64,000 bases of DNA, taken from Ophelia neglecta. Lineage: Eukaryota. The stretch is from assembly GCA_965285935.1 (NCBI GenBank), contig OZ260667.1:63674001-63738000 (forward strand). The letters run 5' to 3'. This document shows positions 7,781 through 57,978 of this stretch, one piece after another. The notes beneath the pieces are model-generated. The model had not been told where the DNA came from and made no database searches. It worked only from the letters and a program-made list of their open reading frames with translations. The translations under genes and the position numbers were made by a program. The number at the start of each line of letters is the position of its first letter. The first letter of the stretch is position 1.

Positions 7781-10700
7781 ATTATAGCTAATAATATAGT
7801 AAAATAGTGAATTTTTATCAGTCTAGCTGGACTAATCAAGATGACGTCGTTCTCCTGCACATTAATGAAAAGTGATTCTTATAACAAGTTTTGTCGACGG
7901 CGACAGGAATCATTCCAATTTAGTGATCAATAACAGGCCGTTTCTTATAGCTCCGACAGGATGTTAGGATTCAAAGACGGGGTGTAATATTTTAATGGCC
8001 CTTCAATCTAAGGTCCCCCGAATCCGCAACCCTAGACTCCTTAAAGGAATATTGCTGTATGTTTAATGTGATTTAGCCCAGCCAGGCCCTTTCATCTCTA
8101 TTGGATACATAATAGAACTCCCACGTTATACACCCCCTAACACTATGTGTGCACATTCCTTAAGTTACACAGCTATTTAGAAGACTATGCTAAGCCTCGT
8201 GCTATTCTGAAACTCATCTCTATCTTGAACAAATATTGCATTTCAACAAAATCAGCAACTTTAAAATAACTTTGCATAATGTATTGACTTTATCGGTCCC
8301 GCCAGACAAACGGTAAACACTACAGACGAGCAGACGAGATCATTTTACTTGATTGTATCCGCCGATTTATCTTCTTTTGAATGAGCGTGGGAAATGCAAA
8401 TAACGAGAAACTTGTTAATATGAAGCCTCACATTTCAAGGCCACTACTTTCAATTCCATTTTTTTCCCCTCAACAATTTATAAGATTCACCTTGCCTTGC
8501 ACATCTTGAAGTTCTTTCATCGACGTATAAAGAGTATTGAATTTATCCGCGCATGCCAGAGAGAACTACATACTCTATAGGTTAACAGCGTGGGGGGGGG
8601 GGGGGGGGTCTTCTGACCCTTGGATCTGCCTATTTAATTGACGATGATATCGGATGTTAAGGTTTATTTATCAGTTACTTGGGATTACCCACTTGTCCTT
8701 CATTGAGACAAGCGATTTCTCAATTCGGTCAACATCTAAAGTCCCAGTTTTAGATGTTCTAAATTAATTTATCGGATTTCAGAAAATAGCTTGTTCCTTA
8801 TTTCACGATAAATCCAGAGATGTCCGTGATATGGATATTTTCAAATTTGGAACTGGCGCCCCACTAACCATCTCCCCAAAATATCCGTCTCCGCCCCACC
8901 ACGTTTATTTGCGTTTATGTTACGTATGACTGAATTTCAATGCATTAGTTTTCACTGAATGTTGTTCTTCTTTCACATGTTGACATTAATGCGAGCTCCC
9001 CTCGCGAGGCTTTGCCCATCACATATTGTGCATAAATTCACACCAAGGGATGAAACACTGCGGAGGAACGATTTTGCTTCGCATAACATCGGGTACCTCA
9101 TAAAATGGACGCCAAAAAGGTAATTTTATCGTTATCGTTTAGACTCTTTACCATAATATCATAAAGCAGATGATAGTGCATGTATTCAATGTTCCAAAGT
9201 CGATTTCAATGCAGAAGCTATCTACGTCAGTGAATTTCTTGCTACATATATGATTTATGTGTGTCTCGATCAGAGGCAAAACCTGCTTAGGTTAAAAGTA
9301 ATCGGTTATGTGTGTATGGAATACATGAATCATAAATGTATACAGCCATAAATGCGTACTTTCAGGGGACATGGGGGGGGGGCACTCAAGGGACGCTAGA
9401 CCCTGTCGACATTGGATAGGCACAGGGGGAAGCATAGCTAAATGAAAACCAAATGAATGGTAGGCCCTATAAGACATATGGAGAGAAAATGATTTCTGAA
9501 GTGATTAATACGAATGGAAAAAGTAACTCGGCTCATTGAAAAATATAAATCCAATCCGCCTGTTATCTATAGTTTGGATTTCGGATTTGGGACGTCATTG
9601 ACTAGATGGGATTGCTAGAATGAAAACTTTTCCAAGTGCCACTTCTCCGCGTTCCCTTAATGATCCACGTACAAATATCTATATAACAATCACAGTAAAA
9701 ACTTTTCTGATTAAATGTCATTCTATTTCCGAATATGAAACAACAATCATTACAACATTGAACAGCGGAGTAATTGCCAAATCTAGATATCTAGGTTAAA
9801 TGACCATTTTTCACAGCCAAAACTCGTTTTATAATAAGCAATCAACACAAATACCGACTGCACGTGATGACATTATTTACCTTTAATGAACAATGACTTG
9901 TTCATCGTGCTTGCAGCTGCAAATAAGCAACTAAATGCAACGATCCCAGGGAACATCGGGCTTTTTCGTGTAAGGTTATCCTAACTTGTAAATGCTTTGT
10001 AGATAATAAGCATAAGGTAAGCGCATGGGCAATTTCCTATATGCTCATATCGGGCCCTTACAAAACATTTACACATAACACAAGCGTGTCAATTTGTTTT
10101 AATTCAAGGATTGTTAAAGAGAAAGGCAGCAGAGGGGGTAAGGGGGGGGGGGCTATGCCGCGTCCGCCCCTTGCGCCCGCCCTGCCGCCTAGGTACACCA
10201 TTAACAAACTGGAACCACCACAGAAACAAATAACTTTTCAAATCAAAATTCTAGGTAAATACTCTTCTCATTCTTGTCATTTATAGATAAAATGAAAGAG
10301 GCAAATCATAAGATGCGAAGATTATCTTAAATCATATTAACAGGGGGAGTACTCTAATTTTTATTTGGGTCCACATAAAAGTTACACAATTGAATTGAAA
10401 TGCATACGAGCTAGGGTGTACATAATATTGAATAAAAATCGTAGACGTAGGCTAACCGTAATAAATAAAATGATTGATTCGTGAGAGTAGATAAGCCTAA
10501 TAGAAAGTTTTAAAAAGAATAATATTATTATGCTATGTGCTTAGATACGATTTGCGGTTTTTTTTATGTTACCTGCGGCCTCTACATCACAGGGAGTCAA
10601 TAATTATATCAGAATCCGAGGAACATGTAGACAAAACTCTTCCAAAATAGAAGCATTTATGAAAGTATCAGCCCTGCTACAAGTAAAATTAAGCCATTTT

Positions 10701-12122
10701 CGTCACGTCGCTTTTTACATACAAACCCACCGATATGCGGCAGTAAGGCCCCACACAAATATAAATAAATATATATCGGGCTTTTTAAATATAAAACGTG
10801 CTTTACTCGTTGCACTTTATTCAGTCCGCCGTGAAGAAGCGATAAGATTTTATTTTCCGAAGTCGGCCCAAAACCATAAGCTGACTAGAAATTGTATCTA
10901 TAATTATGGTTTATGTGTGTTTGCGTATGTGTGACGTTAAGTCATGGCCGTGTGTAGATTCACTATTCAATACAACACAGTGATTAATGAAAACATGGGA
11001 GGTCTAGTGATATAAAATCAATAACGACAAAATCGATTTAAATAGCAAACAGTCTTATCATGTTAAGAAATCTCGAGTGTATATTCAATGGCTTTTTAGT
11101 GTCAGTCTGTCGAGCGTTATTAAGTAGAGAAGGATTAAGGGGACGCGATTCGGTGGCAAGTTTACTTTTAAGGATCATGTTTCAGCCAGCGCAATATTGA
11201 ATAAATGTGTTCTGTCTCGCTTACTATGCTCGGGAAATGCCTTGTATAAGTTTGAACTTTAATGGTCACGGAAGAAGCTTTGCTATATAGGGTAGAGTCG
11301 GGTTATTGTGCCCTTCATCTAATTGCGTGCAGAATGTGCCGACGATACGACACTTTACGTTATTCCGTGGAATAAGCCTACTCTCTGCCAGGAATAAACC
11401 AAAGCGCAAAATTATGAATTTGTCCAACGTTCCCCGACGTTTCCCGACAATCCCCGACATTCCCCGACGTTACCCTATATCCTCACCTTGTTCATAAGTC
11501 AGGGACAGTTAATTTGTTTGCCCAATGGCCTCAAATAAAATGTTTCCTGTGTGTTGGGGGGGGGGGGGGGAGGGTGACACCGAAGCTAGGACCTACCGTC
11601 TCTCGCATCTCCGTGGGGGGGGGGGGGAGAGAGACAGAAAGGGGACGACACGCCAACACTTTTTCTTACCTTGAAATTGGGGACTATTTCTGCCCAGTTT
11701 CTTAAAACAAATGTTAGACTCCCCCATATTTCAAATGAACCGGTATGTCGGAACTCAGAATTGCCCATCGCTTCCCACCATTACTAATAATGGGTCATTA
11801 TATGATGGCAGTTGTTTTGTTTTAAATTTGCGTCATATATCAAATATTAATATTATGTCTCCTGCTCCATTTCTAATGTCAGATGAAATCTTAAATTATT
11901 TCTTATAGCCAGAAAATATGCCAATAAAAAGTTAGTAGTAGTAAACTCTACAAAATATTTTCGACACAAAAAAAGGAAATTTTCAACTACTTCAGAGAAT
12001 TCTTTCTATTGCCACATTCTGACCTGACTTCGGTGCATTATCCTGTCCCTTAGAGTATTTTTTTCTTGAAAAGAAGATTTTAGAAAACGATGCTCATCAT
12101 ATATTTTACAAAAATACAAATG

Positions 12123-12301
12123 CAGAAACCTGTTTTGAAGACCACCTCAATATTCAGACCACCTGCCAATTCAGACCAGAAATATTAAGACCATACAGTA
12201 CACACACAATGCAATGCAAACTAACTTTCGATAACAGACCACCTCAATAACCAGACCAGTATTATTCGGTCCTCGGTAGTGATAATTCACAGGTTCCAGT
12301 G
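12123..12301. mobile_element. Degenerate Tc1/mariner-type MITE
   Basis: cagaaacctg...aagaccacct...cagaccacctg...aattcacaggttccagtg; same internal motifs as the copies at 46.6-48.8 kb and 56.5-57.2 kb. Confidence 0.7.
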
Positions 12302-12534
12302 TAGTGTGACCTTACTCAATTTAATCAGAGCTACATGATTATACACTGGGGGAAACAAACCGGGCTCAATTTTAGAGTTTTAGCTTAGAGTAATGTGGAG
12401 TGTAGATTTGGCCAAACAAAATCTCTCAACAGTCAGGTTTGCCTAGTGAGACATTTTCGATTTTCGGTAACAAATTAGGCAAATTCTTTGATGCTAGAAT
12501 ACTTTGTTTGAGATACAATTCAAATAAACCTGAT

Positions 12535-12549
12535 CTCTCTCGCTCTCTT

Positions 12550-12587
<38 letters not shown>
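12535..12587. repeat. (CT)n microsatellite
   Basis: Visible CT dinucleotide run. Confidence 0.9.
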
Positions 12588-12590
<3 letters not shown>

Positions 12591-13384
12591 TTATTGTGCG
12601 AATCGTCTAATTGCGCCCAGATAGTAGCCTCATTTTGCTCGCAATGTGCAGAAACCACTTCCTTGTGGCCTGTAAATATCTCTATCGCTATTTTTATATT
12701 TTGTATTATTGTAAATAATGGTTGAGCATAAACAATATGTGTTGACAAGCTCCCTTAGCTACTGCGCATTGTTATTTTGTACTTTATAGGTAATTTGTAT
12801 ACATGTACATGTAGCCAAGTAGCGGCTGTTAACATACTTTGAATTGAATTGAATTGAATTAAAGGCTGGAATATGTCTCTCCTCCGGTGGTGTGTGTGTA
12901 TGAGTGGGGAGGGGGGGAGGGGGTGTTCCACCACATCTTCTCCGGAAATGAGGGACGGAGGATTTAGGACCCACCCTCCGGGAACTGTGTAACTGGGGGA
13001 GGGGACACTATGGTCTCCCTGTCTGTCTTCAAAGAGAGGGGAGGGAGGGACGCTTAGGTTAGAAACTACCGTCTATTAACTAGAGGACGGGGACACATGA
13101 CCTGGTATCATTCTTATAAGTTTAATTATAAGGATTATATCTCATACCTAAGGATTACACATTTAGAATGCAGTCGACACTGGGAGAAAATTAAAAATTG
13201 GCTGCATTTAATCAGAAAAGCTTAGTTTTAATTATAAAGATATTTTTCTTAAAAACATGACAGAGCATATTTAGAAATGTAAGTGCATTAAGTGCGTGGA
13301 CGTCTAGCGACAAAATCAATAATGAAAACTTTATCAGAATAATAAACAGATATCTGGGGGACGCGAAGATATGACCGGCCATCT

Positions 13385-13940
13385 CTTCTCCGGGGGAAGG
13401 GAACTAGGAGGTTGTAACTCACCCTTTCTCTACTGGTGACGGGGACTAGTAGGTAAGCATACACCCTATCTCTACCGGGGAGGGGACTAGGAGGTAAGAA
13501 TACACCCTATCTCTACCGGGGACGGGGACTAGGAGGAAAGAATACATCCTATCTCTACCCGGGAGGGGGACTGGGAGGTAAGAATACACTCTATCTCTAC
13601 CGGGGAGGGGACTAGGAGGTAAGAATACACTCTATCTCTACCGGGGAGGGGGACTAGGAGGTTAGACCCCACCCTATTTCTACCGGGGAGAGGGCTAGGA
13701 GGGAAGAATACACCCTATCTCTACCGGGGAGGCGCACTAGGAGGTTAGACCCTACCCTATCTCTACCGGGGAGGGGGACTAGTAGGTAAGAATACACCCT
13801 ATCTCTACCGGGGAGGGGGACTAGGAGGTAAGAATACACCCTATCCCTACCGGGGAGGGGGACTAGGAGGTAAGAATACACCCTTTCTCTACCGGGGAGG
13901 GGGACTAGTAGGCAAGAATACACTCTATCTCTACCGAGGA
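13385..13940. repeat. G-rich minisatellite, 41-42 bp unit, ~13 copies
   Basis: Unit ccggggagggggactaggaggtaagaatacaccctatctcta; it explains the 14-aa repeat in ORF 13654..14151. Confidence 0.95.
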
Positions 13941-16900
13941 GGCAACCCATCCCTTGGGGGGGGGGGGGGGTGAGTAGGGTTGCCACGGGTGCTAGGGCCG
14001 ATTTCCTGTGGTGGTGGAGGGAGGGCGGCCACAGGGGCCATGACCCATCCTCTGAGGGTGGGGGGGGGGGAGAACGAGAGGGAATGTGGACACCAGGATT
14101 CGCCCCTTGTTGGGTGTGCGGGGGGGGGGAATAAAAAATGACCACAACCAATTGATTTGCCTAAATAGAAGGGCCAGTATAGTATGGCTAGCATTTGTGT
14201 GAAATAAAAAAAAACGAACTCTAAAAACTGTGATATGTCAGGTTTGCTGTAAGCATGACCGACATTTAGCAAAGGGGCCTTTTTAATAATATGCAATTGG
14301 TTCCAATGTGTCATTCGAATGGGCCAGCTTGAGTCAGCATTCATGAGTCAGCTAATAATACATTTCAACTGTAATAAAATCCGTGTTTTCACATTCCCAT
14401 CACAAACGGATTAAAAAACAAGAAAATGTTTGATTACATTCCAGGACGTGTGTGCAGCATGCCGTGACGATCATGAGGGGTTAGGACACGTGATAAACAG
14501 AGTTAGTGTTAACAAAAAGGACGCTGATGGTTGTACGCCCCTCCATTACGCTTGTTATAGAGGTCATGTGGATTGCTGTCGTGTTTTGATAGACCACGGT
14601 GCATCCGTTAATGTCTAAGAGTACCAAGGGGTGACACCCCTTTACCGGGCGAGTGCAGATGGCCATGTTGACTGTTGTAAACTTTTACTGGAGAATGGCG
14701 CCTCCATCGATATGCAGGACAACACAGGCCAGACTTCCCTATTTACAGCAAGTCTTAATGGCCATGTTGGCTGTTGTTCCCTTTTATTAGAGAAAGGGGC
14801 TTCATTTGTTATTCCATGTAAGACAGGTGATACTCCACTTCATGTCGCTTCTCAGATAGGTTATATAGATTGCTGTCGTGTTATGATAGAACACGGTGCA
14901 TCCGTTAATGTCCAAGAGTACCAAGGGGTGACACCTCTTTACCGGGCAAGTGCCAACGGCCATGTTGACTGTTGTAAACTTCTACTGGAGAATGGCGCCT
15001 CCATCAATATGCAGACCAACAAAGGCACGACCTCCCTGTGGACAGCTTGTTTTAACGGCCATGTTGACTGTTGTAAACTTTTACTGGAGAATGGCGCCTC
15101 CATCGATATGCAGGACAACAAAGGCGCAAGAGCCCTATACATGGCTTGTTTGAATGGCCATGTTGACTGTTGTAAACTTTTACTGGAGAATGGCGCCTCC
15201 ATCGATATGCAGACCAACACAGGGAGGACATCCCTATACAGAGCTTGTTTTAACGGCCATGTTGACTGTTGTAAACTTCTACTGGAGAAGGGGACTTCAA
15301 TTGACATTCCATGTAATATGGGTTATACTTCCCTCCAAGTCGCTTCTCAGAAAGGTCACGTTGATTGCTGTTGCTGTCTGATTGAAAATGGTGCCTCCAT
15401 AAATGTCCACAAGAAAAACACATTAACCCCTCTTTCCCTCGCTTGTGGGGGCGGCCACACTAAGTGTGTTGAGGTGTTGTTGGAGAAAGGAGCTGATCCA
15501 TCTCTAGCTGATTCAGTGCGAAATGGGCCGATAGATATTGCAAGGTCAAAGGGTCATGTGGACATTGTCAGAATATTAGAGAAATATAAGGCCAACCTGG
15601 CTGAGAGGAATAAGCGGGTCGTCGCTGATACCGCGAAAGTCTCTACATCGGCGAGTGCACCTATATCTGAATTAAAGAAACTAAAAAATGTCTTCGAGAA
15701 ATCACCTAGACCCAGCACGTCCCCTGTGGAAACAGTCATTTGTACACACACTACTCTCTGTCGACTGTTTATACAAAGCTTGGATTTGAAAGGTGAGTGA
15801 GTCAATCTAAGTCAGTGCTGTATATTAGCTATTGCATTAACTTGGGAATCAGTTGTGTTTTTTTGTTAATGGTGTAATGTAAATGAATATCAATAGTACA
15901 AAAACCTACCCATAATACTGTACTTACCTCCCAAGATGCCTACTTTAATCCACAATATGACGTGTGTTTCTGTGAGAGTTGCCACCGTGAGAGAGGAGAC
16001 AATCTCTACTACACCCGTGGACAACCTCCCAAGGACTACGGTCTTCCCATAGGATGGTTCAAGTTCGGACTGGTGTGAGTATCCCATATGTTTTTCCTCC
16101 TATATGGCATTACTAACACAATGAATACATTTCTAACAAGCAGGATTATTATTTATTTCAGAGCCCCAGCTAAAGCAGCTGGTGAGGATGCCTTTACGAA
16201 GTGGCACGTCGCCTTTCACGGCACCCGAGTTGACTGTGTCGGACAAATTCTGAAAACTGGTGACCTTCTGATGCCAGGCAAGGATACCTGTATTCACACC
16301 CGTTGACTTATTTCAATAAGCAATACTTAATAGCATCCATATATTGCAATCAATTTCTTTGTGTAATGAAAATTATTAATACCAACAAAACGTTTATAGT
16401 TTTCTGAATAAACGACAAAAAAGTGCAAAAATATCTAGGTATATGAATTTAGCCAGTTAATCATATCAATTACAATAAATCCGTAGACAAGCGTTAGTTA
16501 TAGGAATAATAAGAGTTTACCTGGGAGATTTCTGTTTAATACAAGACTCAGCATTCGTTTCATTTCAGGCGATTTCACACCTACTGGGGCCTTTTTAAAA
16601 CCGCCATCTAACCACTATGACGAGGAAAATCCTAAACTGAAGCCACCTCCCGGTCATGACGTCAACAAGATTTACCTATCTCCGTCTATTAGATATTCTG
16701 GGCTAGAAGTGTATGCCCCCAAATCAACGTAAGTATGCCTGATACTAGTATATAGAAAATACAGTGCAATATGGAGTTGAAGCATCTACTCTGATAACAA
16801 CTTTAACACTATCAACCATTTATGCAACTAAAGGGGGAACTGTCCTCTGTAGAGGGCTGTAGTGTGTAATACCTTTAACTTTAAGAGTAAATTACGTTCG

Positions 16901-18079
16901 GTAAAACGATTGTTGTGATAAACTTCAATATTGAGCTATAGCAATTACAATTTCAACATTTTCAACCCTGAATATCTGTAATTAAAGGTCAATCTGTAGG
17001 GATGATAGGGTTATTTACAATAGTTTAAGGTTATTGACAAGTTGAAATAGTGCATTGTGTGGTCCCTTATGCTGTTTGGCCTTCCAATAGATCCAAGGTA
17101 AATTCAGGACCATGGTTTAGTTTTATAAGCAGTAGGGAAATCAAGTTGTATATGGAATGTTGACGGTTCAGTAGGGACATCAAACTGTCTGCTGACTGTT
17201 TAAGGGTCCAGGTGGATTATGACAGAATTTATAATTTTGCGATTTTGCGATTCGACTGGAAGTAAATACAATGTGAGGGTTGCATTCCAAGTCCATATAA
17301 GACCAGTGCCTGCTATTCGTATTTAAATTATTAAACTTTGTTTATTTATTGTTGACAGTTCAGTAAGGAAATTTTTTACGGTTCAGTTAGGAAATCAAGC
17401 CATCTATTTATTGTTGACGGTTTCTGGTGAATTGAGCCACGTTTTATTGATTTGTTCTTCTTGATCCATGATTTCGTTTTGCATGACGGCCAACAATAAC
17501 CGTTATTATTACCATTTTGACAATCTTCAACCTCACATCAGGTACAAAGATCCGAGAACTGGACGTATTTACAATGCGAGGGTGGCGTTCCAAGTTCGAA
17601 TAGCGCCAGGAACATACGACGTAGGTGACCAGACCATTGGAGCCAAAACTCAGATCGACCCCAAGTTTCCTAATAGTGAACTGGAGTGGTCCACCAAGAG
17701 AAGAGGGGTCACCATTCTAGTTGGGCTCCTTGTCAAGATGGAAAACCCGATGGCGGGCCTTTCATTTCTTGACAAGAGCTCACTTGGAACTACTATACCA
17801 CAAAATATAAAATTTTGAAGAATTTAGTTTTTATTACCCTATAGCACGTATGAGCAAAGAAACACAAGCAAAAATAACTGTTTTAATTGTCTGTATGAAT
17901 ATAAATGTATCCCTATAGCTTGTAATATGTCTCATCTGTATTACTATGTTGCTTGTATTCCATAGTGGATATATATGTGCTATCACGTATAATGAGAAGA
18001 AAGTGAATGTAGCTAGACATTTTTTATAGTTCATGCATTTTCCAAAACATAAGAATGTAACTACAAATTAACTTGTGCT

Positions 18080-19597: not shown

Positions 19598-19607
19598 GTC
19601 ACGTGAC
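19598..19607. promoter_or_regulatory. Palindromic E-box/CLEAR-type motif GTCACGTGAC
   Basis: Perfect 10-bp palindrome 4 bp upstream of the ATG of a candidate first exon. Confidence 0.3.
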
Positions 19608-19611
19608 TGAG

Positions 19612-19732: not shown

Positions 19733-22700
19733 GTAACTATGCCTTCACTACTCTCAAGCCAACTCTATCCATATTTATAATATGCTAATGAGAATGTTGG
19801 GCGATGTCTGCCCCCATTGAAGAAAGTCAAATAACTGTGAATTTGTAATTTGAAATTAATCATAAGGTGGGCATTGTTACTCATTTAAAAGAATATGACT
19901 ACTGCTTTATGCCAGGTCATTGCAGGTGCCCTGTACTGCTTTCGCTCTATCACCAGTTATTAAATCACAGTGTGTATCATGTTTATATTACATTGAAACA
20001 AAATCAAAATTTCTGATGACTGTGAATACCGTTTTGTAAGAAACGATTTATGGTTCAGTGGTTGGTTGGTTTATAACACCTTAATAAGAAGGTTAGCAGA
20101 TCAACTTAAGACCGTCCCTTTGTTCTTATTCCGGAAATTGCTGTCTATTTTTCATTATAGAGAGAATACTTTGGATTCCTGATGAATTTAAACAGAAGTA
20201 GCAGCACTAACTATCGATATCTCGCTGTATATAATTTATCTGAGCTACTATTATTTGATCTGCACACTCTACCAACTCATCATATTATCTAACTTTATAT
20301 TCTACCGACACATCATACTACTCTCTGACCTGTATACTGTACCCATGCTTCATACTACAATGTAACCTGTATAATGTACCCACACCTTATACTGCTATCT
20401 GATCTGCATACTTTTATCCAAACCTTACACTAGGAGCTAGTAACCCAAATATCAATGGCATAAAAAGAATACCTTACCTTCCAAGGAGTATACAATTGCT
20501 GCACCTTTTCTTTAAAACAAGGGTCAATTTGCTATAATACTGGGCTTCACATACACAAATGGAAACAGATATGCTCTAAGCATGGTGCTTGAAAATTTCG
20601 TAACAAATTTTAGTTTTTACTTTTATTTGTTATTACATTACGCTGCAGCAAATTGGCCAGTGACTTTAAAGAGAAGGCTGAATTGTATCTCTAATAATAC
20701 AATGACTCACAAGATAACTCACATTACCCGTTACTTAAGGTCATAATTATTAAAGCATTATTATCAGACTCAGATTTTATTTTGACCAACACAAAATAAT
20801 ATACAAACATTCTATGAAAAAGTAAAAAAAAAGTAAATAATTACTTAATGTGTACAAATCATAAGTAGTCAAATAATTAAATAATAGGTCAGGGAGACCA
20901 TTTTAAGATCAGAATTGATCGCTATCAAATGGCCACCCTTAAGAAAATTTAAGTTGAAAATGAAAAATGAAAAATGAAAGGTCAATTTATAATCAACAAT
21001 ATTTAAAGATCCAAGAGCATGAATAACAGATAAATTACATTAAATTAAATTAAATTGACTTAAAATAACCCGCGGCCTTAAACAATCACATCCAGACAAA
21101 CATTATATATAAATAAACAGTAAATTATATAACTGATAACAAGAGAGCAGATTAAAGGAACAGACATTACATACAGGAAATAACATAATGAGCAGAACAA
21201 CATCTCACGGAAACCTCAGAGAACAATGCAGGAACAAAAACACAGCGCCAACACCGTGTCACACGCCTGCGACTTCGATATGGTCAGCACCGACCCAATG
21301 ACGTACAAGTACGCGAAGCGCCCACCCGCCAACACCCACAGCAACCACAAACTGGTTACTATAGGCAGTAGCGGATAGACCCCACGCGCACCCGCGCAAC
21401 GACGGGCCAAAAAAGTCAAGAGCCAAAAACATCGGAACTCATACATAAGTGTGTGCCCATTAAAGGGATTAAACACTGGAAATAACAAGCATAGCCCCTC
21501 CAATTCATTAGAGTTTATATTAGGAGTCAAGCACTCATCTCTTGACAGCTATAACAATCAAAAACAATGCAGTCCTCGGAGTAGTCATTAAGAAAATAAT
21601 GTTTAATATAACAGGAGTAACCTTTTAGACTGTGTGTCTCTACCTTACTTACAATAAATTTTGGCGTTTCATTTAATAATATGGAGACATTTTGTCTTAT
21701 ACATCTCTCCGCAAACTTGTGAGCCACCCTTGGGACATAGATATCTTTACTCTGCCTAGTGTTATACGTGTGTATTTCGCTGCGAGGAACTATCCGAAAA
21801 TGATCCCCAAAATAAGTTGGAAGATCTTTGTGTTTAAATTTATAATAAAACTTGAAAATATGTTGTTTGTGTAAGTCCTCCGCCTTAAGGAGTTAGAATG
21901 CCTCAAATAGTGGCTCTGAATGTGCATAAAAGCTACTTCTTGTTATAATCCTCACAGCCATTTTCTGTAGTTAATAAACTCTATCTGCTACGTTACCCCA
22001 TGCAAGTATACAATAATTTAAGTGAGGTAAAATTTGGGTTGAGTAAATCATTTTTAGGATGTTGAGGGGAACCATATTCTTTATTCTGTTGATTATGCCC
22101 AAAGACCTTGATATTTCATTGCAAATTTTACTGGTATGACCCTTCCAGATAAGGTGTTTGTCCAGAGTAAGGCCCAGAAAGTCAAACTCCTCAATGTAAT
22201 CTATTGGTACGCCGTTAATCTGTATAAAAGGTACAGATATTTTTTTCTGTGGCGTGTGAAGATTGAATTTCGTTTTCTTAATATTTAGAGATAATTTGTT
22301 TATTTTTAACCATTCAATAACTTTACCCAATTCATTGTTCAAGTTAATATCTAGAGGAGAAGCGTGTTGAAATGTGTGTAGTGTGCTAATGAGCGAGGAG
22401 TCATCTGCGTAAATAATTGATTTAAACATGTTGGTTGCATAACAAATATCATTCATATAAATTATGAATAGGAGGGGTCCTAAAATAGAGCCTTGAGGTA
22501 CACCAGTAGTTATTGGTAACTAACTGACAGATCCATGAATATACTAAGGGGGATTTTGCCATTATCCATTTCTTGTACAATCCGGTCCACCATTTCAAGT
22601 GATGCCAATTCAGTACTGTGCTTTTCCCTAAAACCATATTGGCTATTGTAAAATAATTTGTTTTTATCAAAATAAGAGTAAATTTGATTATAAATAACCT

Positions 22701-23229
22701 CTTCAAAAAGTTTTGAAATTGCACAGAAACAGGCCTGTAGTTGTTTAAATTTGCATCATCATCTTTCTTGAATAAAGGGATTATCTTTCCGACTTTTAGG
22801 TTGTCAGGAAAATGCCAGACATAAGTGACTAATCAATTATGCGTGCTAAGGCAGGGCTCAATTCCACACTCATTGATTTCCAAACTTTAACTGATAGGCC
22901 ATCAACACCGCAACTTGTTTTTGGTTTCAATTTATTTATAATGTTCTCTACGGTTTAATTATTAATTAGTTCAATTTTGAAAAGAGAATTGGGTGGCGCT
23001 CTTAGATAATCAGAAAATATTTATTGGTGTCAGATGTGATTTTTTTCGGCTAATTTAGGTCCAATTCCAGTAAAGAATTCATTGAAGCTTTTTGCAATAT
23101 CATTTTTGTTAGAGACTAGTTTACCATCAATATTTAAAGTTTGTTGGTGATCCTTTATATTATGAGACTTGTTTAATACCTCCTTTATTATTTTCCATGT
23201 GTTCTTCATATCATTAGCATGCTTAGTAA

Positions 23230-25154
23230 CGGTCCGACGATTCACCGTACCGGGACCGTGCCGGGCGAAAACACCGTACCGGGACCGTACCGGGCGACTA
23301 ATCACCGATTCGGGCAACGTTGGATGTACCCAAGACCACAACATCACTGGAAAAGGCAGGAAGCCTCCAGAATGATAGCTTCTCCCGTCGGGATAGTCCT
23401 CGCTCGTGCAGTGTTACCCTAACAGGGTATCTACTTGGGCGGGCTAGCCGACGGTGCCACTGGTATAGGTACCCTGCACAGAAGGCGAAATGCTCAGCAC
23501 CGTAGTCACGGGGGGCATATTTCTTAGCCTTTCCGACTGCATGATCGTAGTCAGCCTTGCTCATGCTTTCAGATGCCAAATGCTGATCTAACTTCTCGCA
23601 AAACTCCATTTCGCGGGTCTCGTGCATTAACGGCAGGCCGCGCGTCTTCAAGCTGTTCAGGTAGTGTTTCAGCGCTCTGAAAAGGAGCTTCGCCAGTACA
23701 TTCGCAGGGTGATCAGGTGATGAGTAGTGGTCGGCCATGGTGAGGTGATTGAACTGACCTTCTAGATTTCTGACTACCCTGTTTTATGTGTGCCTGTCTT
23801 GACTGTTAGGCGGGTCTGGATTATGATTGCATTTCATTTTGCGCACACACAATAAAGCTGTCAAGAAGCCACAGCCATCTTTCAACCACTTCAAAGAATA
23901 TCACGAAGCCACTACGCTTTGAACAGAAGCTACAACGCCTCTCAGGGAAGCTACTTTCGCTTCGTTGACCTCGATCACAGAAATTTATGAAGCCACTTCC
24001 AGTTTCTCGGAAGCCACTACCAGCCTTCAATCTTTAACTTGACCAACCAACTTTATGAAGAATGAAGCTAGTCTATTTAAAAGTTAACTGAGCAAGAAAC
24101 AGATTCTTGGTCTGCTGCTGATATTAAAAACACAGCAACTAACCACTAATCTGCTCATCGCAATTTTGCGACCCATGAACACACAATGTGGAAGAATACT
24201 ATTGTGCAATTTTTCTGAACATTGCGATCACCCAGCTTTTTCATGCTGATAATTTCATCGATCAAAGGCTAATTTCTGGTCATCTATAAACACTCTACAA
24301 GCTGTATGTACATGCTACTAAAACTAGTTTGGTGATCTGGTAATCAAAAAATGAAATCATATACAGACTGTTTTTTACGGGCAGCTCTGTAACTAAAAAC
24401 TCTACTCACTATACATGTATATACATTTTGGTTCTGAGTGTTCACCTATGGAGAAATTATTCTTGTCCCAAATTATTATCAGTTAATCTGTACTGTTATG
24501 TAAAAGTAGGTGAGTCATGGTAATTTAAGCTTGGTGCCAAAGAGATTTATCGTGAAAGCTGGGTGTGCATATTATACTTACAGCAGTATTTATCAAATAT
24601 GAGTAAAGATATACATGTATGCGCTTGGCACAGGCATCTGAAAATAAACTAAACATATATAAAGTATTTTACTGAATAACAACTAAATTATTTTTTGGAT
24701 ATTTTTACTTTATTTGACATGATAAGACAGAATTAATATATTAACATATGTACATATATACATTTTGCCCCTGGTACATAGACTAGCCTTCTACCTGAGT
24801 TCTGACAACCTAGGGAATCAATTGTCACTGGTCTGAAGATGAGCCTTCACCACCAGAAATCTGCACCTTCAATTTTTGCGAATCACATGTAAAGCGCACC
24901 CGTTTTCTAATAGATGTTGTCTTATCTGACCTTGGTCGTCTCCTCTGGCCCTTCTTTTTCCCGCCACGGCTGAGAAATGTTTGAATAATTCAACTTTGGA
25001 TGGAAGGTGTCGACTTGAAGTCGCACCTTTCGCTAGACAAACATGCACTCTTGTGAATTGAAATTTAACAAATTAATCTATTTAATCCAGGAGTTTGGCA
25101 ATGCTCGAAGGCAATGTCCTTTTTTGCAATTTATTTTTCAGTTTGTCAGTTTGT
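23230..25154 (-). mobile_element. Unclassified 1.9 kb insertion with 8-bp target-site duplication CTTAGTAA, containing ORF 23298-23738
   Basis: cttagtaa occurs at 23222-23229 and 25155-25162. Removing the insert and one copy restores LINE ORF2 AKRIYYHTCFTKHANDMKNTW. No terminal inverted repeats. Confidence 0.8.
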
Positions 25155-26732
25155 CTTAGTAAAGCATGTGTGATAATATATTCTCTTGGCGATCCTAATA
25201 TTGCTCTTCAATAGTATTGTATGTTTTGAGGCTAATTTTGCAATTATCGTAGTTAACTGAAGTATACGGTGTTGCCCTTGCCTCTTTATAAAGCTTATCT
25301 CTAAATGAAATTGACCTTATGATACCCGCCGTGATCCACTTTGTCTTTTTATGTCTGTGTTTTTTTAATTTAACTGTCTTAGGAGCCAAAAATGTATCAT
25401 AGGCAGTCTTTATCACCGTCTCTAATTTGTTATAGTTGACATTTGGATCTGTTTCCTGAGAAGCATTAATTTCCACAATAGTGTTAGACATTATTATTGT
25501 CTCCCTGAAATTTTGAATGGCTGCAGGACTTGACCGATTTATCTTTATATATTTTGGTACAGATGGGAAGGTGAAGAAATTGTCCAAGACCGTAAAACAT
25601 GGTTGGTGATCTGAAATATTGTTATTCAAAATACCACTCCTCATATTCTCTGTGCGTGTACTTAGCTTACAAAAACAATTGTCAATGAGAGTACCACGTT
25701 TCTTAGAGAAACGAGTTGGTAGAGTTATTTTAGGGAAGAAACTATTAGTGGTCATCTCATCAATGAATTCGCTTATCATCGTATTTACATTTATGTCTAA
25801 TAAATTTATATTAAAATCTCCAGCTATTATTGCCTCGGTGTTTGACTTATCTAGTTTCTTTAGAACTGGGGATATTTATTCCCAGAACCTCCGATAGTTG
25901 TCGTAGACATTTCTAGGTGGTCGATAAATGTTCCCCAGTATTAAGTTTTTTTGATAATTATGTCCCATTACCTCGATAAGGGAGACCCTCCTACACAGTA
26001 TTATCCTTAACTAAATCCATCAGTTTAAATCTTAACCCATCACGTAAGTAAATTGCTAGACCTCCATGTTTGGAGAAAGTTTTTCCTCGGTGAATTAGCT
26101 GATAACCCTCTATTTGTAGTAACGATATGTCAGAAGCGCTATCCAACCAAGTCTCTTGTAGGCAAATTGCCTCAAAGAAACAATTTTCCAACCTGAATGT
26201 TTCTATCAAAATCACCAATTGTTCAAATTTTGCATGAATACTTTGAATATTCAGGGTAAGTACAGGAAAAACACTCCTAGTAACCGACATCAAATCGATG
26301 AGTTGATTATCATCCAAATAAGATAATTGAAAAATACCAGGTTCATTCTCAGAATTATTATCGTCATCGTTAATATTGTCACTCAAAATGCTCAAAAGTG
26401 AATTCCCCACAATGCCCCCGAAAGCGCTCAAAACATCATTATCCGCCATTATAGTGCACCAAGTTATTAAAGCGCTTAGTCATGGTTCCCAACTGAGTAT
26501 GCCCACTGTCATAGATTATGTGTAGATGAAACAAAAGTGCGTTTGTGCCGCCATGTACATGCAATTTACGCAAGCCACAAGTCAACATACATTTAAGGAT
26601 ATCATCTTTTAAGTTGATAACATAGTATTTTGTCCAGCCCGAAACAATCATGCAAAGAAAGTCAAAAAGGAAAAAAATCATTCCATACATACCACCGCTC
26701 CAAAATCATAACCCGAAGTTCATGCTTAGGGA

Positions 26733-31078: not shown

Positions 31079-31257
31079 CAGTTAAACCTGTCTAATTAGG
31101 TCAGTCAAAGGACTGGAAAAAACTAACCACATTATGTAAAGACCTTAATATGCAGGTCAGTTAACACAGGAATATAATGGGGGTTGGATTATTATTTAGT
31201 GACCTTAGTGGGAAGGTGACCTTATCACAAAGGTGACCACAAACACAGGTTTCACTG
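31079..31257. mobile_element. Tc1/mariner-type MITE (divergent subfamily)
   Basis: TA|cagttaaacctgt ... acaggtttcactg|TA, 179 bp. Confidence 0.8.
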
Positions 31258-32071: not shown

Positions 32072-32250
32072 TAGAGATTTTTAGATTTATCTGACGTGTC
32101 TCTCCGGTACACGTGGAGCTCAGCCGACTTGGCAATAAAGTTGATGTTAGCATCGGGACTTTTTGTGTTCACAGAAGTGGCAACCTTTGCCTGGTTGGCT
32201 GGGCCCCACGGCTCTCAGACGCACACGTCACAATAATCTAAAACTGTCTA
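32072..32250. mobile_element. MITE with ~28 bp imperfect TIRs (possibly PIF/Harbinger-like)
   Basis: Left end tagagatttttagatttatctgacgtgt; right end reverse complement tagacagttttagattattgtgacgtgt. Superfamily is inferred. Confidence 0.6.
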
Positions 32251-33233
32251 TATCTGTCTAACTTTGATTCCTGTCGCGCTTTCTTTAAGCTGTGAACTAA
32301 CACAGTTTAGGTAGTAGTTCGGTTGTGATGTTTAGACTTAGTCCGCTCAGCGATCCCCCCTCCCCCTCCCGTTTAGTGAGGTAATACATTGCATTAATAA
32401 GGCTAGGTTAACTTCGAGTACAATCAAAAAAAACATTGCTATATACAACGATCGAAACTCCACCAGCATTGGAGGTTACGATAGGTTTGTAATCGCCTTT
32501 CAGCACCACCGCGGTAATAGAATTCAAAAAAGGAGGCTGGTAATCTTTGTCCAGTTCCGAAATATTGTAAAATTTAGAAACAGGTTGGGAAAAAGCTAAG
32601 GAACAACAGAAACATACGCCATGTGGGTTGGGTTGGGGGGAAAATGTTGCTTACGCCCCTCCCTCCATCGTGACCTCCCCTCGCCAGGACCCCCCCCCCC
32701 CCTAAATCCGCAAATGAAATACGGATTGGAACTACCACAACAACAGATAACTTTTCAATTTATAATTACATTCAAAATAATTGTGCTATTTAGGGCAATG
32801 ATAGATAGAATAAAAGAGGCAAACCATTAGATTAAAAATATAAAAAATCACAATATAAACCGGCAGAAGACTCTAAGTTGGAGTTGGGTCCACACAATTA
32901 AAATGTACACGACCAAGGGTGTACATAGCACTGAATCAACATCAATAAAGTCCGGTATAGCCTTCACGCAGACGTATAATATATAACAAGGACTGCTTGA
33001 GAAAGTAGCTCAGAGTATTAGAGTGTTTCAAATGCAATTGTATCAATTAAACTCTTGATTTTGCATTTCATTTCACGCACAACTCAAGCTCGGGCGTACA
33101 GCGTGCCGTCAAGTGGCGATAATCAATGAAAGTCCGAAGTCTACGTTCATATCTTATCAACGAGTGTGCAAAACACGGGTTGAATCACGGCCCAGACGCG
33201 GTTGTGTATCTACTGCTGTTGTTCATTCTTAAA

Positions 33234-36200
33234 ATGGCCGCCACAAAGGTATGCTTATCTTATGTGTTAATTAATATAGCTGGTAACATTATAACATAAA
33301 TGAAGGGCATTAACTCTAAGGTTGTTTTGAATGCCGTAAATGCCTAGGTCATTGAACGCCTTGCAAAAAATATGTTTTATTTACATTTAGTGTCGACTAG
33401 CAGCAAAACCTGGTTTAGGTAACCGGACCACAAGAACATTAAATACATAAATTAAACACTGTATAATAGTATATAATACTGTATAACACTGTAATACCAC
33501 AATAAGAACCTTTGTATAGGAGGGAATTAAATTGATTAAAATTAAGAACGAGGAAGGCTTTGGTCACGTCCTTATTACCACTAAATACCACACTACAATA
33601 TCTAGTGTCGATTATAATATTGTAAGTGCGCCAAGTCTAGTCTTGTCTAGTCTTGTCACGAATCCACCCGTTCTTTCTCCGGGGAAGGAAGACAGGCACC
33701 TATTTTTCACCACACATTCCCATCTGGAGACGGGGGGGGGGGGGGGGGGAGAGAGAGAGACTAAGGGCCCCGTCCTGAGGATCCACACTCCCCGGGAGTT
33801 TCATAGAGCTTGGCAAGGAAACGTGTTGAGTGTCTCCCCCTGGAGGAGGGGGGGGGGGGAAGTTGTGGGACTGAATTATAACATGTGTTTGCTATATTGA
33901 AATCGGCCAGTTCTAACTGTATAGTAATCACACAGTAAGGCATCGAGTCAACATGTACCAGAAGCTCAGTGGTCCCCCAAGAGTGCAACGGCACAAACTG
34001 ATGACTCGCCCCCCCCCCCCCCCCCCCCCCCAAATTGCCTTGCTTTATTATGAAATTTCCATCTTTCTCAGCGGAGAATAGTGGAGAATAAATCTTATGA
34101 TATGAATTCAGATTGTGGTCGACGAAGGGCTTGTGTAACGTGTCTGGGACATGATTATATTGTTATATATGTGTGGAGTTGTGTCAGCCATATTGGTTCA
34201 AAGGTTGAGGTTAGTTTCCCTGTTCAATAAGCCACAGCGATAGATGTGATACAGCGGTCTTGTGATATTAAATCAATAATGGCAAAGCCAAATTCGAATG
34301 TAAACAGACGTACCATGTAATGAACTGTCGAGCATACAGTCACCATCTATATATAAGGTAAAGTCCAGTTATTGTGCGTATCTTGTGTGCATCGTGTAAA
34401 ACCAGCCTTATTCTAAGCACGATGTTCGCATAAATAGATAGATTACCTAGTCAAATAAAACTACTGTGTGGGAGGATTAAACGATGTGCAGAAATGACTG
34501 ATTATATAACGTATCCTCTGCCTCTTCATTATTAACCGACGTTATTATATATCCTCTGCCTATTCATATTCAACCGACGTTACCACATATCCTCTGACTG
34601 TTCATTATTATTTGACGTTACCATTCATCCTTTGCATGGTCATAATTACCTGACTGTGACACTCTGCCTGTTCATAATTAACCGACATTACCATATATTC
34701 TCTGCGTGTTCATAATTAACCGACATTACCATATATTCTCTGCGTGTTCATAATTAACCGACGTTACCATATATTCTCTGTGTGTTCATAATGAACCGAC
34801 ATTACTATATATTCTCTGTGTGTTCATAATTAACCGACGTTACCATATATTCTCTGCGTGTTCATAATTAACCGACGTTACCATATATTCTCTGCGTGTT
34901 CATAATTAACCGACATTACCATATATTCTCTGCGTGTTCATAATTAACTGACGTTACCATATATTCTCTGTGTGTTCATAATTAACCGACGTTACCATAC
35001 ATCCTCTGCGTGTTCATTGTTATCCGAAGTTACCATTTATCATCTGCCTATTCATAATCAACTGACGTTACTATATATCCTCTGCCTTTTCATGATAAAC
35101 CGGCGTTACTATATATCCTCTGCCAGTTCATAATCAACGGACGTTACCATATATTCTCCGCCTGTTTAAAATTAACCGACGTTACCATTTATCATCTGCG
35201 CGTTCATTAATATATGATGTTACCATATATATTCTGCGTGTTCATAATTAACCGACGTTGCCGTTATACGTTGCGTGTTCATAATTAACCGACAGTACCA
35301 TATATCCACTGGTTGTCCATAATGTGACCAAAGATCATCTGCCGGTTTATATTTAACCGACGTTACCATATATCCTTTGCCTGTTGATAGAGCTAGGACT
35401 TTTCATTGCCAAATGGCATTTATTGAAATGGTTTGTCCGACCCGTCTACACTACCCCCTGATAGGCTCCAGTACATTTTCCCGCCCTCCCCCCCCCCCCC
35501 CCGGAGGCGTGGATAAAAGCTCATATCGATGCCAAAACTTTGCTCTGCTTTAAAGATTGATAGCTTTTATTGAACACGATTTGAAGATAATACATTTTTA
35601 TAGCCCTGAGTTATTTTTAAGACGAAAATTCGGGTTCTTAACATGTAATTTTGTGATTTTATTTCATAAATTTAACACTTTTTGTAATTTTGAGTTTTAT
35701 AAAGACAAAGTTTCGAGATCTATGTCAATAAATATCGTAATTTCGAGTGTTCATGTTAGTTTGCTCCTGACACACTAGCAGACTTCCGTAAAACGATCTT
35801 TCATCATCCTTGTAACAATCTCCTTTTTTGATATCTACAATAATGCAATGAGCACACCTATAAAACTGTCAAAGCTATTTCAGATCATTATTTGTTTACA
35901 CAAATCCTGTTCTGATGTAAGTGAGAATTTCATACCCGATATATCAATTGACATAATAAGGATTAGATCGCCTGAGGTATTCAGGCTAATTTAGCCCTAA
36001 ATATTCCGAATAAGAGAAATTCAGATATTATGAACGTGCTCAGACAAGCATCGTCGCCGTGCGTAGACTGGGAAAATTATTTTGATGCGTTTTGATAATA
36101 TGAATGTTAGTTTTCTTGAATCATAAGTCTAATACCATTGTTGTTTAATACATTTATAGTTTATATATAATGTAAATAATCAGTTACTTTCCCTAAAACG

Positions 36201-39200
36201 ATGTGCATCTTCCAGGAAGAATTTACCACACCCAGCGTGCCTAATAAATTTAATAAATAATGATAAATTAATTGTTTGGGTGTCAATTTAATTTTAGTTA
36301 CAAATGGGACCTGATGAAGAAAAAAAGCCTCATAAACTTATAACCTGTGCAGTTCTCCTCATCCCTAATCCCGTTTTTATTTCGATTATCATGGAATGCA
36401 TGTCAAACAAGCACCAAGAGCTTGCCCTCTAGATGTCACACACATTCGATTGATCACATATATCTATTGGTTCAAATCGATATAGAAAGAAGTATTTTTC
36501 AAATTTTCGTGTTTTTGTATTTTATTGTAATGTGTCATTATTAATGTATTACCAAACAAAATCTATAATACTTTAATTTCAGAGCCTCCTCCGAGCATGC
36601 CAAAGTGGCGATCTTAAAACGTTGAAGCAGGTGATAGGCAAGGGGAATGTAAATACTAAGTTCAACGACGACGATACTCCCCTCCACATCGCGTCGGCAA
36701 GAGGTCATGTCAGTTGCTGTCGTGTATTGCTAGGCCAGGGGGCCTACATTAACGCCCAGAACTGCAGAGGCGCTACCCCCCTTCGCCGAGCAAGTAACAA
36801 CCGCCATGTTGCATGTTGTAAACTTTTGCTAGAGAATGGCGCGTCTATCGATTTGCAGGACAACACAGGTCAAACCTCTCTATGGGGAGCTTGTTATAAC
36901 GGTTATGATGACTGTTGTAAACTTTTACTGGGGAATGGGGCTTCCTTTGATATAGCGCCTAAGAACGGCGCTACCCCCCTCCATGTCTCTGCCCAAGAAG
37001 GTCATGTAGGCTGCTGTCGTATTTTGATAGATAACGGCGCCTCCGTCAATAACCAGAACTGCGAAGGGGTAACACCCCTTCGTCGAGCGAGTTACAAAGG
37101 CCATGTTGACTGTTGTAAACTTTTACTGGAGAATGGCGCCTCCATTGATTTGCAGGACAACGCAGGTCAGACCGCCTTATACGCAGCTTGTTATAACGGC
37201 CATGTTGACTGTTGTAAGCTGTTACTAGAGAATGGGGCTTCCCCTGATAAAGCATCTAAAAACGGTGCTTCTCCCCTGCATGTCGCTGCCCAGGAAGGTC
37301 ATGTAGGTTGCTGTCGTATTTTGATAGACAACGGTGCCTCTGTTAACACCAAGTGCTGCGAAGGGTTAACACCCCTTCGCCGAGCTAGTAACAATGGTCA
37401 TGTTGACTGTTGTATTTATTTGCTGGAGAATGGCGCCCTCATTAATATGCAGGACAACACGGGCCGGACCTCTCTATGGGGAGCTTGTTCCAATGGCCAT
37501 GTTGAGTGTTGTAAACTTTTACTACAGAATTGGGCTTCCGTTGATATTCCAAATGTGAACGGGTTCTATCCACTCCACATAGCTTCTCAGGAAGGTCATG
37601 CAGATTGCTGTGGCTCTCTGATAGAAAATGGTGCATCCATTACTGCCCTAAGCAAAGAGGGATTAACCCCTCTTTTCCTTGCATGTAAGAGCGGTCACAT
37701 TAAATGTGTTGAGGTATTGTTGGAAAAAAGCGAAGAGCTATGCCTTGATGATTCTGTACCTATAGATACTGCAAGGTCAATGGGTCATTCCGAAATTGTT
37801 AGACTATTAGAAGAATATAAGGTCAAGGTGGGTGAAAGCAAAAAGAGACTGAAGAACCTCTCCACAATAGGACCTAACTCGAGCAAGTCCGAACTGAAAA
37901 TAGACACGTGTACAAACACCAAGCTCTGCCAGCTGTTTATTCAAAGCTTAGAGTTGAGTGGTGAGTCTATCAAACTTAATCATTGTGTTAGTTTAGCTGT
38001 GGTGTTTACTTGTTGTTCAGTAGTGTTCTGTTGTAAATGGCAAAAATAATGTAAATGAAAATCAAAATATCGTCTTAAGGTTTGGACCTATATAAGTAAA
38101 CGTAATACAATTTCTAACCTGTACTAATGTTTTTACCTCCCCAGATGCCTACTTTAATCCACAATATGACGTTTGTTTCTGTGAAAGTTGTCACCGTGAG
38201 AGAGGAGACAATCTTTACTTCACCCGTGGAAAACCTCCCAAGGACTACGGCCTTCCTATAGGATGGTTCAAGTTTGGGCTGGTGTGAGTATTCCCATTAT
38301 ATTTCTAGTCTCCTATGATATTAATGAAATGATGAATGTACCTTAAACAACAAATTTTTCAATTTTTTCAGAGCCCCAGCTAAAGCAGCAGCCGAGAGAG
38401 CATTTGATGAGTGGCATGTGGCGTTTCACGGCACTCGAGCTGAATGCGTCGGACAAATTCTGAAGACGGCTGATCTACTAATGCCAGGCAAATATACCTG
38501 CATTCATCAGTTGAATTATTACAATAATCAGTGTTAAGGATGAATAATGAATAAAATTATTAGGTATTGTTAGTAACAACAATAAAGAGTAATATAAATA
38601 GTTAAGAGCTTGTGAATTAATGAAACTAAGGGGGCATAAAAGAAAAATAAGGGATGTTAGACAGGTACAGAGCCATAGGTTTATTGAGCACATCTCTCAC
38701 TAGGAACTTGGTAAAGTTGTCTGCTACAAGCAATATGCCAGATTCCTTATTAGATATTCTAAACAAAAATATCGAAACATTTTTCTCACTTTCAGGTGAT
38801 TACACACCCGAGGGAGCCCGTCTAAAACCGCCACCCAACCACTTTGATGACGACAATCCAGCAATGACGCCACCTGCCGGTCATGACGTCAGCAAGATAT
38901 ACCTCTCTCCGTCCATCAGATATTCAGGGCTAGAAGTGTATGCCCCCAGATCAACGTTAGTGTGCCCGGTACTAGTATCTAAACAATTAAAGGCACCTAG
39001 GTGTTAATACTTTAACTAGGGGTTCATCGTCGGACAAGACGATTGGTTGATTTAAATTAGTGTTTTACGTGCTCTTGCACTGTTGTACATTACGTGTTGC
39101 CAGCCAGTTCAGGTCAGTAGTTGGTATTTTTAACCATAAGGAAATCAAAATGTCAACATAACTGGCGGTGGAGGTAGCAAATCAAGAAGTCTATTGTTTG

Positions 39201-39660
39201 TTGACGGTCCAGTCATAAAATCAAAGAGTGTGTTGATTGTTGAAGGTTAAGTAAGCATAATGAGATGTCGATTTATAGATGACAGTTCTTAGTAAATGTG
39301 GGCATTTTTTTTTCTTGTTCTTTATACACAATTTTGCAATGGCTTCTTGTAAATCATCTCCGTTATTATTTCTCGTTTCACAGATACGAAGACCCGAAAA
39401 CTGGAAGGATTTACAACGTGCAGGTTGCATTCCAAGTCCGAATAAGGCGGGGAACATACGACGTAGGGGACCAGACAGTCGGAGCCAAAGCTGAGATCGA
39501 TCCCAAGTTTCCTAACACTGAGCTGGAGTGGTCCACCAAGAGGAGAGGGGTCACCATCCTAGGTGGGCTCCTTGTCAAGATAAAAGAACCGATGGCGGCT
39601 CCTTCGTTTCGTGCACTGGGCTCACTTGCACCTACTGTACAACAAAATCTGCAATTATGA
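33234..39660 (+). CDS. Ankyrin-repeat + NEURL4-type ADP-ribosyltransferase, copy 2 (apparently intact, ~694 aa)
   Basis: Inferred exons 33234-33248 (MAATK, tentative), 36583-37960 (~12 ANK), 38145-38283, 38372-38487, 38796-38955 and 39384-39660 total 2085 nt with no stop. The last four exons have the same lengths as in copy 1 (139, 116, 160, 277 nt). AFHGT, IYLSPS and ELEW motifs are present. Confidence 0.88.
34500..35385. repeat. Minisatellite, 38 bp unit, ~23 copies
   Basis: Unit cataattaaccgacgttaccatatattctctgcgtgtt; homogeneous in the centre, degenerate at the edges. Confidence 0.95.
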
Positions 39661-57211: not shown

Positions 57212-57223
57212 TAGACTTTGAAA

Positions 57224-57974: not shown

Positions 57975-57978
57975 TAAA

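Follow-up and report, generated by a model that had tools for sequence, protein, structure and literature searches.

Two predicted genes that join an array of ankyrin (ANK) repeats to an ADP-ribosyltransferase (ART) domain of the NEURL4 type lie in a stretch of 64,000 nucleotides from the 762-Mb genome of Ophelia neglecta (assembly GCA_965285935.1, contig OZ260667.1). This stretch, hereafter the window, corresponds to C12:63674001-63738000 and is free of N. An earlier note on this DNA had placed a tandem family of ANK-ART fusion genes at positions 9105-39660. According to that note, small 3' exons are spliced in frame to the ankyrin exon, ankyrin repeats stand in place of the Neuralized (NHR) repeats of NEURL4, the SAM domain is missing, and a full H-Y-E catalytic triad is retained. 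Two such genes are indeed present from position 14445 onwards, and nothing coding was found in the part of the span between 9105 and 14444.

Predicted exon structure of the two ANK-ART genes

Both genes lie on the + strand, and each consists of one large ANK exon followed by four small exons (Table 1). The large exons match the Pfam families Ank and Ank_2 with E values of 1e-74 to 1e-109; for gene 1 (1e-74), Pfam covers only the part after an in-frame stop codon and counts 9 repeats, and a custom ANK profile counts 11. The predicted acceptors are all AG, and the predicted donors are GT, GT, GC and GT at identical places in genes 1 and 2 (in order, GTGAGT, GTGAGT, CAG/GCAA and GTAAGT or GTTAGT). 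Intron phases of 1, 2, 1 and 2 carry the ANK frame to the final stop codon, exon 2 being entered in phase 1 and left in phase 2, and exons 2-5 contain no internal stop. In both genes, exon 2 carries CFCESC, exon 3 HVAFHGT, exon 4 KIYLSPS and exon 5 ELEW. At the DNA level, the four exon blocks are about 85% identical between the two genes, and the introns barely align. Splice sites, phases and the closed frame thus bear out, as far as sequence can tell, the predicted joining of the small exons to the ANK exon, and gene 2 looks intact. Intron 3 (16278-16568 and 38488-38795) has a GC-AG border, CAG/GCAA, that is conserved across both subfamilies of the family described below.

The two halves of these genes are connected by more than proximity. 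The frame of the ANK exon passes the last repeat and a low-complexity linker of about 90 aa, and then enters a C-x5-C...F...L.L element. In public full-length homologues this element directly precedes the CxCxxC motif; judged by this order, the ART module begins inside the ANK exon, and both halves share one exon. The ANK exon closes with a donor whose phase equals that of the exon 2 acceptor. The same layout recurs across the genome: of 150 scored exon-5 copies, 93 are preceded by a match to the gene 1 linker, on the same strand and within 8 kb (median 2,057 bp), and at each of the 12 long-array loci that were sampled (24-48 repeats) the ANK frame is followed by four ART exons that are open and keep their motifs. 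Separate transcription of the ANK exon and the ART exons, with the fusion being a misreading of adjacent genes, is therefore very improbable. Proteins of about 210-270 aa that consist of the ART domain alone do occur in other animals, and the public runs with this DNA contain no exon joints. However, adjacent genes would not account for an ANK frame that continues into the C-x5-C element, where the ART module starts, and stops at a GT donor of matching phase, for the fixed spacing at 93 loci, or for the lack of both a start codon and a separate ART-only first exon between the halves.

Gene 1 differs from gene 2 by an in-frame TAA at 14616-14618, in the second ANK repeat, at a site that is occupied by Q in other repeats. 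Because of this codon, gene 1 is probably a pseudogene or N-terminally truncated. Its open ANK frame measures 393 aa, and the same 393 aa are found in a copy 567 kb away (C12:64257136-64259453). The linker and exon 5 of this copy are 100% and 99% identical, respectively, to those of gene 1, and the nonsense codon is apparently common to both. The pair arose from a large and very recent segmental duplication, or else the assembly contains one stretch twice.

Since both ANK exons begin at an acceptor without a nearby ATG, the gene models imply that a short coding exon must exist upstream. The regions ahead of the two genes share two colinear pairs of non-coding blocks (Table 1), which are candidates for promoter or 5' untranslated sequence. 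A Pro/Gly-rich minisatellite occupies 13654-14344, just 5' of the gene 1 ANK exon, and its minus-strand units read LLVPLPGRDRVYSY.

Homology, predicted catalytic residues and fold of the ART module

The homology of the C-terminal region to the ART domain of NEURL4, as the earlier note had recognised, is evident from searches in both directions. A profile of exon 5 (15 paralogues, alignment A2) was compared with 1.84 billion cluster representatives at E values up to 0.001 and matched 639 protein clusters, NHR-repeat NEURL4 proteins among them. The NEURL4 matches, with E values of about 1e-18 to 1e-19, include the cluster of P0089 (1242 aa, five NHR repeats), which contains an Argiope "neuralized-like protein 4", and P0098, in which six NHR repeats precede the ART domain. 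Conversely, tblastn with spider and lizard NEURL4 on the window recovers exons 2, 3 and 5 in colinear order (E 1e-11 to 1e-17). The definition of this domain family is said to be the work of de Souza and Aravind in 2012. The two window genes are not NEURL4 orthologues: Pfam detects only ANK families in the large exons and no NHR repeat (PF07177). Between the ANK repeats and the ART module, Pfam gives no SAM match at E values up to 1. When the ART exons were searched one at a time, Pfam PARP (PF00644) was not matched, and three terminal ART-exon open reading frames (two from gene 2, one from gene 1) matched no family at all. The exchange of NHR for ANK without a SAM domain is therefore as the earlier note described it.

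The residues expected of an active enzyme are conserved. Alignment A3 is invariant at H-G-T, at the P and Y of SPS..Y, and at the second E of ELEW, and 30 paralogues retain HGT (26 of 27), YLSPS (27 of 28) and LEW (30 of 30). The NEURL4 ART family is already known (PMC3417536; PMC8932523). The C-terminal domain of NEURL4 ADP-ribosylates in vitro, an activity abolished by changing HGS to AGA together with ELEW to ALAA (Cardamone et al., PMC8932523), and the window genes have HGT and ELEW at the mutated residues. In human NEURL4, L takes the place of the triad's Y (PMC7955679), whereas both window genes carry Y there, in IYLSPS; with HGT and ELEW, this residue makes the predicted H-Y-E triad complete. 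The spider NEURL4 P0168 reads YGT instead of the HGT of the family, and its catalytic His may have been lost. Among the public proteins considered with it (P0055, P0108, P0119 and P0144), some carry two tandem NEURL4-type ART domains, and in P0144 a WWE poly-ADP-ribose-binding domain lies ahead of the ART domain.

An active domain need not act on ANK-bound proteins. It might ADP-ribosylate nucleic acids or work as an NAD+-consuming enzyme, in which case the ANK array would do no more than localise or regulate it, and the reported stimulation of NEURL4 activity by DNA would fit such a role (PMC8932523). We regard this as quite unlikely, as a conserved E in a PARP-like site is in keeping with protein modification and chain elongation (PMC8932523).

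The fold was examined on a public homologue, P0019, as a stand-in for the spliced protein of the window. P0019, a Ptychodera protein of 267 aa that bears the name "neuralized-like protein 4 isoform X2", aligns colinearly with the last part of exon 1 and all of exons 2-5. The AlphaFold2 model of P0019 has a mean predicted local distance difference test score (pLDDT) of 84.9. Foldseek gave 41 matches to this model at E values of 0.001 or below, every one a PARP catalytic domain (PARP4, 2, 1, 3, 10, 16 and 14). All 50 rows returned by VIA-align are likewise PARPs, with Z scores up to 10.5 and root-mean-square deviations of 3.2-3.3 Å over 135-138 residues for PARP10 and PARP16. As in ARTD enzymes, H closes a strand that a helix follows in the model, and E opens a late strand. 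The modelled homologue thus supports the PARP-like ART fold predicted in the earlier note. When solved structures were searched by sequence, neither exon 5 by itself nor profile A3 produced more than chance matches, such as GntR and xanthine oxidase (E >0.3). No solved structure exists for any member of the family, and its likeness to PARPs is at the level of fold only.

Family size, ankyrin variation and genomic surroundings

The tandem expansion anticipated from the window extends far beyond two paralogues. Genome-wide, at least 150 exon-5 copies were found with E values of 7e-17 or better (150 scored among 230 first-look candidates), and at least 93 of them have an ANK-linker exon upstream. 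The main cluster, around the window, holds 79 exon-5 copies within 1.9 Mb of C12 (62.53-64.44 Mb), 73 of them on the + strand, at a median spacing of 18.8 kb. A second group of 31 copies is located on C2 (4.0-4.75 Mb), and smaller groups occur at other sites. The sampled C2 genes are ANK-ART genes as well; for example, locus L056 encodes 39 repeats. Two subfamilies are interleaved, a gene-1 type of about 70 copies and a gene-2 type of about 10, whose exon 5 is about 71% identical to that of gene 1. Searches for annotated proteins sharing the ANK-linker part, with queries of 490 and 1020 aa, returned none, only generic ANK proteins, and the species or the ANK-ART family seems to be absent from the protein collection searched.

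The ANK array always resides in one exon; each window gene has 11 repeats, and the sampled paralogues have 24-48. Across 485 repeats, framework positions are nearly invariant, and the most variable positions are 5, 13, 1, 10, 14, 3 and 2. Six positions were reportedly randomised in the designed ankyrin binders of Binz et al. in 2003, and the variable set includes five of these six. Cys-Cys occupies positions 19-20 in nearly every repeat (469 and 430 of 485, respectively), within the motif GHVDCCKLLL, in the window genes and in L046-L061; typical ANK repeats have aliphatic core residues at these positions.

Codon comparisons separate the enzyme and the scaffold from the predicted binding face. 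For ART exons 3-5, 26 paralogues compared with gene 1 give a pooled synonymous divergence (dS) of 0.129, a nonsynonymous divergence (dN) of 0.037 and a dN/dS of 0.29. Copies differ little at silent sites (dS 0.07-0.23). Between genes 1 and 2, the ART exons have a dS of 0.47 and a dN/dS of 0.21. The ART exons are under purifying selection. In the ANK arrays, reciprocal-best repeat pairs of 85% to under 100% identity were compared: at the predicted binding positions 2, 3, 5, 13, 14 and 33, dN/dS is 1.47 versus 0.47 elsewhere, at equal dS. Five disjoint gene pairs give 1.68 at those positions versus 0.50 elsewhere (Fisher p 2.6e-6). Relative to silent change, the binding positions evolve about three times faster than the framework. 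The predicted binding face therefore evolves at least as fast as expected under neutrality, while the enzyme and the scaffold are constrained; this pattern suggests, short of proof, positive selection on the ANK binding face.

Other genes and transposon remains share the window with the ANK-ART genes (Table 1). Two intact GT10 fucosyltransferase genes belong to a subfamily of about 16 copies, 81-100% identical, all within the C12 cluster at 62.57-64.45 Mb. Seven of these copies are found downstream of a gene-2-type ANK-ART gene, 3-10 kb away and in the reverse orientation, and both kinds of gene were therefore amplified jointly. GT10, SH2 and NEURL4-type ART domains are combined in one Branchiostoma gene model, P0087 (C3YQJ2). 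A minus-strand open frame of 418 aa (50294-51550), situated between the GT10 genes of the window, has no Pfam match.

Table 1. Predicted exons and other features, in window coordinates
Feature	Position	Strand	Content and basis
Gene 1 exon 1	14445-15792	+	11 ANK repeats, linker of about 90 aa, C-x5-C...F...L.L; Pfam ANK, frame, acceptor
Gene 1 exon 2	15936-16074	+	CxCxxC(H), start of ART core; GTGAGT donor, tblastn with NEURL4 and P0019
Gene 1 exon 3	16162-16277	+	WHVAFHGT strand, predicted catalytic His; GC donor
Gene 1 exon 4	16569-16728	+	IYLSPSIRYSG, Tyr position of the triad
Gene 1 exon 5	17542-17818	+	ELEW strand (second E is the invariant one), C-terminus, stop codon
Gene 2 exon 1	36583-37960	+	11 ANK repeats, linker, C-x5-C start of ART module; open throughout
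Gene 2 exon 2	38145-38283	+	CxCxxC
Gene 2 exon 3	38372-38487	+	HGT; GC donor
Gene 2 exon 4	38796-38955	+	IYLSPS
Gene 2 exon 5	39384-39660	+	ELEW, stop codon
Decayed partial duplicate of exon 5 start	17249-17305	+	In gene 1 intron 4; tblastn segment matching P0019 residues 204-222
Upstream non-coding blocks, gene 1	10210-10440, 10955-11077	+	blastn and tblastx, 67-71% identity, stops in all frames
Upstream non-coding blocks, gene 2	32727-32943, 34212-34332	+	Colinear with the gene 1 blocks
GT10 fucosyltransferase genes, two intact	43666-44949, 53551-54834	-	Pfam E 1e-52
Long interspersed nuclear element (LINE) with GDSL-esterase open reading frame	1-6000	+	Transposon remains at window start
Degraded LINE (endonuclease and reverse transcriptase)	21971-26449	-	Between the two ANK-ART genes
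Integrase-bearing element	57200-63000	+	Transposon remains near window end

Proposed function and comparison with known systems

We think it rather probable that the ANK-ART genes, each combining a variable array with a NEURL4-type ART domain, capture and modify partners as a diversified conflict repertoire. The concave face of the ANK array would bind a protein partner, and the C-terminal domain would use NAD+ to ADP-ribosylate this partner, or itself. The family as a whole would act as a repertoire of recognition and effector functions in biological conflict, most likely in innate defence. This reading is favoured because it accommodates the turnover of the genes by duplication and decay, the variable number of repeats, the fast-evolving binding positions and the conserved enzyme domain. 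A role in defence is plausible, and the support that it draws from the turnover, the repeat number and the binding positions is indirect. The further proposal that the roughly 100 ANK-ART genes constitute a germline immune repertoire is a tentative one, which we consider possible. Here, the hypervariable arrays would bind molecules of pathogens or parasites directly, and the ART domain would ADP-ribosylate the non-self target or modify itself to signal. If true, such a defence would act by direct recognition and modification, unlike NLR, TLR or PARP14-type systems.

Several observations weigh against a conflict repertoire. Nothing ties the ANK-ART family to infection. The three public runs that contain this DNA, all from one sample, yield genomic contigs that cover the introns and have no exon joints. 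No coding first exon or start codon was found by blastn and tblastx between the two upstream regions; with the 5' exon not located, a signal peptide or another N-terminal domain may be present. The homologue used as fold proxy is only about 47-63% identical to the window in tblastn segments. Hypervariability at binding positions is a general property of ANK proteins, and the excess of dN over dS at these positions is not significant in the disjoint pairs (p 0.06). Finally, gene 1 is broken by its nonsense codon, and in the main cluster 27 of 72 ANK exons have open frames shorter than 450 aa (range 50-1763 aa), so that many copies are damaged and may be dead.

This damage raises the prospect that the cluster is mainly the product of recent segmental duplication, with most copies decaying and the family having no function, or with a few members used at most. 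The short ANK frames, the stops found in several exon-5 copies, the low dS among copies, the LINE debris between the two window genes and a nonsense codon common to gene 1 and the 100%-identical copy 567 kb off are all what such duplication and decay would leave. We nevertheless consider it unlikely, because decaying copies would not be expected to keep the ART dN/dS at 0.2-0.3 over many pairs, also between the subfamilies at the higher dS, to retain the catalytic motifs in nearly all copies, to remain open through all exons in 12 of 12 sampled long-array genes, or to preserve constraint at ANK framework positions.

The genes might also have an everyday cellular role. As housekeeping regulators, the ANK-ART proteins would mark endogenous partners for turnover or help to organise organelles, with no part in defence or conflict. 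Their layout resembles that of tankyrase, which acts on axin and telomere proteins, and NEURL4, another known relative with a part in host processes, has mitochondrial and centrosomal proteins as its targets (PMC8932523). Such regulators, however, are normally single-copy and conserved, in contrast to a family of at least 93 copies with 11-48 repeats and fast-evolving binding positions, whose ANK-linker part has no close annotated counterpart among public proteins. For these reasons, a purely housekeeping function appears improbable.

The diversified conflict repertoire that we prefer can be set against three kinds of known system. The closest in its enzyme is NEURL4 itself, with which the window genes share a homologous ART domain, the element order C-x5-C, CxCxxC, HG[ST], LSPS and ELEW, and the PARP-like fold. 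The two differ at the triad, as described above, and in what precedes the enzyme: NEURL4 is a conserved, low-copy protein with five or six NHR repeats, whereas the Ophelia family has ANK arrays and exists in at least 93 copies.

The closest in its layout is tankyrase (PARP5a/b), in which a PARP-fold ADP-ribosyltransferase with an H-Y-E triad likewise follows an ANK array. ANK clusters of tankyrase present substrates to its PARP domain, and the analogy suggests a similar logic for the window genes, in which the ANK array would capture a substrate that the ART domain then modifies. Unlike tankyrase, the window genes have no SAM domain, their catalytic domain is not Pfam PARP and resembles it only in fold, and the family carries a single uninterrupted run of 11-48 repeats in massively multiplied copies. 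Tankyrase orthology was considered and rejected, as both the SAM domain and the Pfam PARP domain are missing. The earlier idea of a tankyrase-like assembly that uses another family of ART domain is thus upheld, with ANK repeats and an H-Y-E triad in the absence of SAM and Pfam PARP.

The third comparison concerns other fusions of the same enzyme. A Pfam architecture scan of the 33 exon-5-profile hits longer than 300 aa places the NEURL4-type ART domain at the extreme C-terminus behind many partners, including NHR, SPRY-NHR-ARM, LRR, LRR-ZU5 and NHR-ZZ, as well as WWE, SH2, CCCH, a GT4-conflict glycosyltransferase and a thioredoxin-kinase combination. ANK repeats occur with this domain in a single case among the 33 hits, P0127, a transcript of the protist Gefionella. 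The tankyrase-like assembly therefore holds, but the fusion is not a one-off, given the many ART partners and the ANK combination in Gefionella. Because the same C-terminal module follows such diverse recognition or repeat domains, these architectures indicate that the NEURL4-type ART domain is a mobile effector module. The amphioxus LRR-ZU5-ART, GT4-ART and SH2-ART proteins, the brachiopod SPRY-NHR-ARM-ART protein and the WWE-ART proteins all follow this plan. None of them, however, matches the linker of the window family, and no tandem expansion on such a scale was seen among them. In the literature covered, which did not extend to the architecture surveys of the Aravind group, neither an ANK-NEURL4-ART fusion nor a comparable expansion is described.

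To our knowledge, one human protein is the only NEURL4-type ADP-ribosyltransferase studied experimentally, and the blanket annotation "neuralized-like protein 4" hides the many partners of the module. The locus presents a NEURL4-type enzyme module as the effector end of a huge and rapidly diversifying ankyrin-array family. If active, the family would provide dozens of natural variants for how ANK arrays choose targets of ADP-ribosylation, as well as a concrete candidate for ADP-ribosylation-based defence in invertebrates. The ANK-ART family would represent a natural counterpart of tankyrase that was assembled independently.

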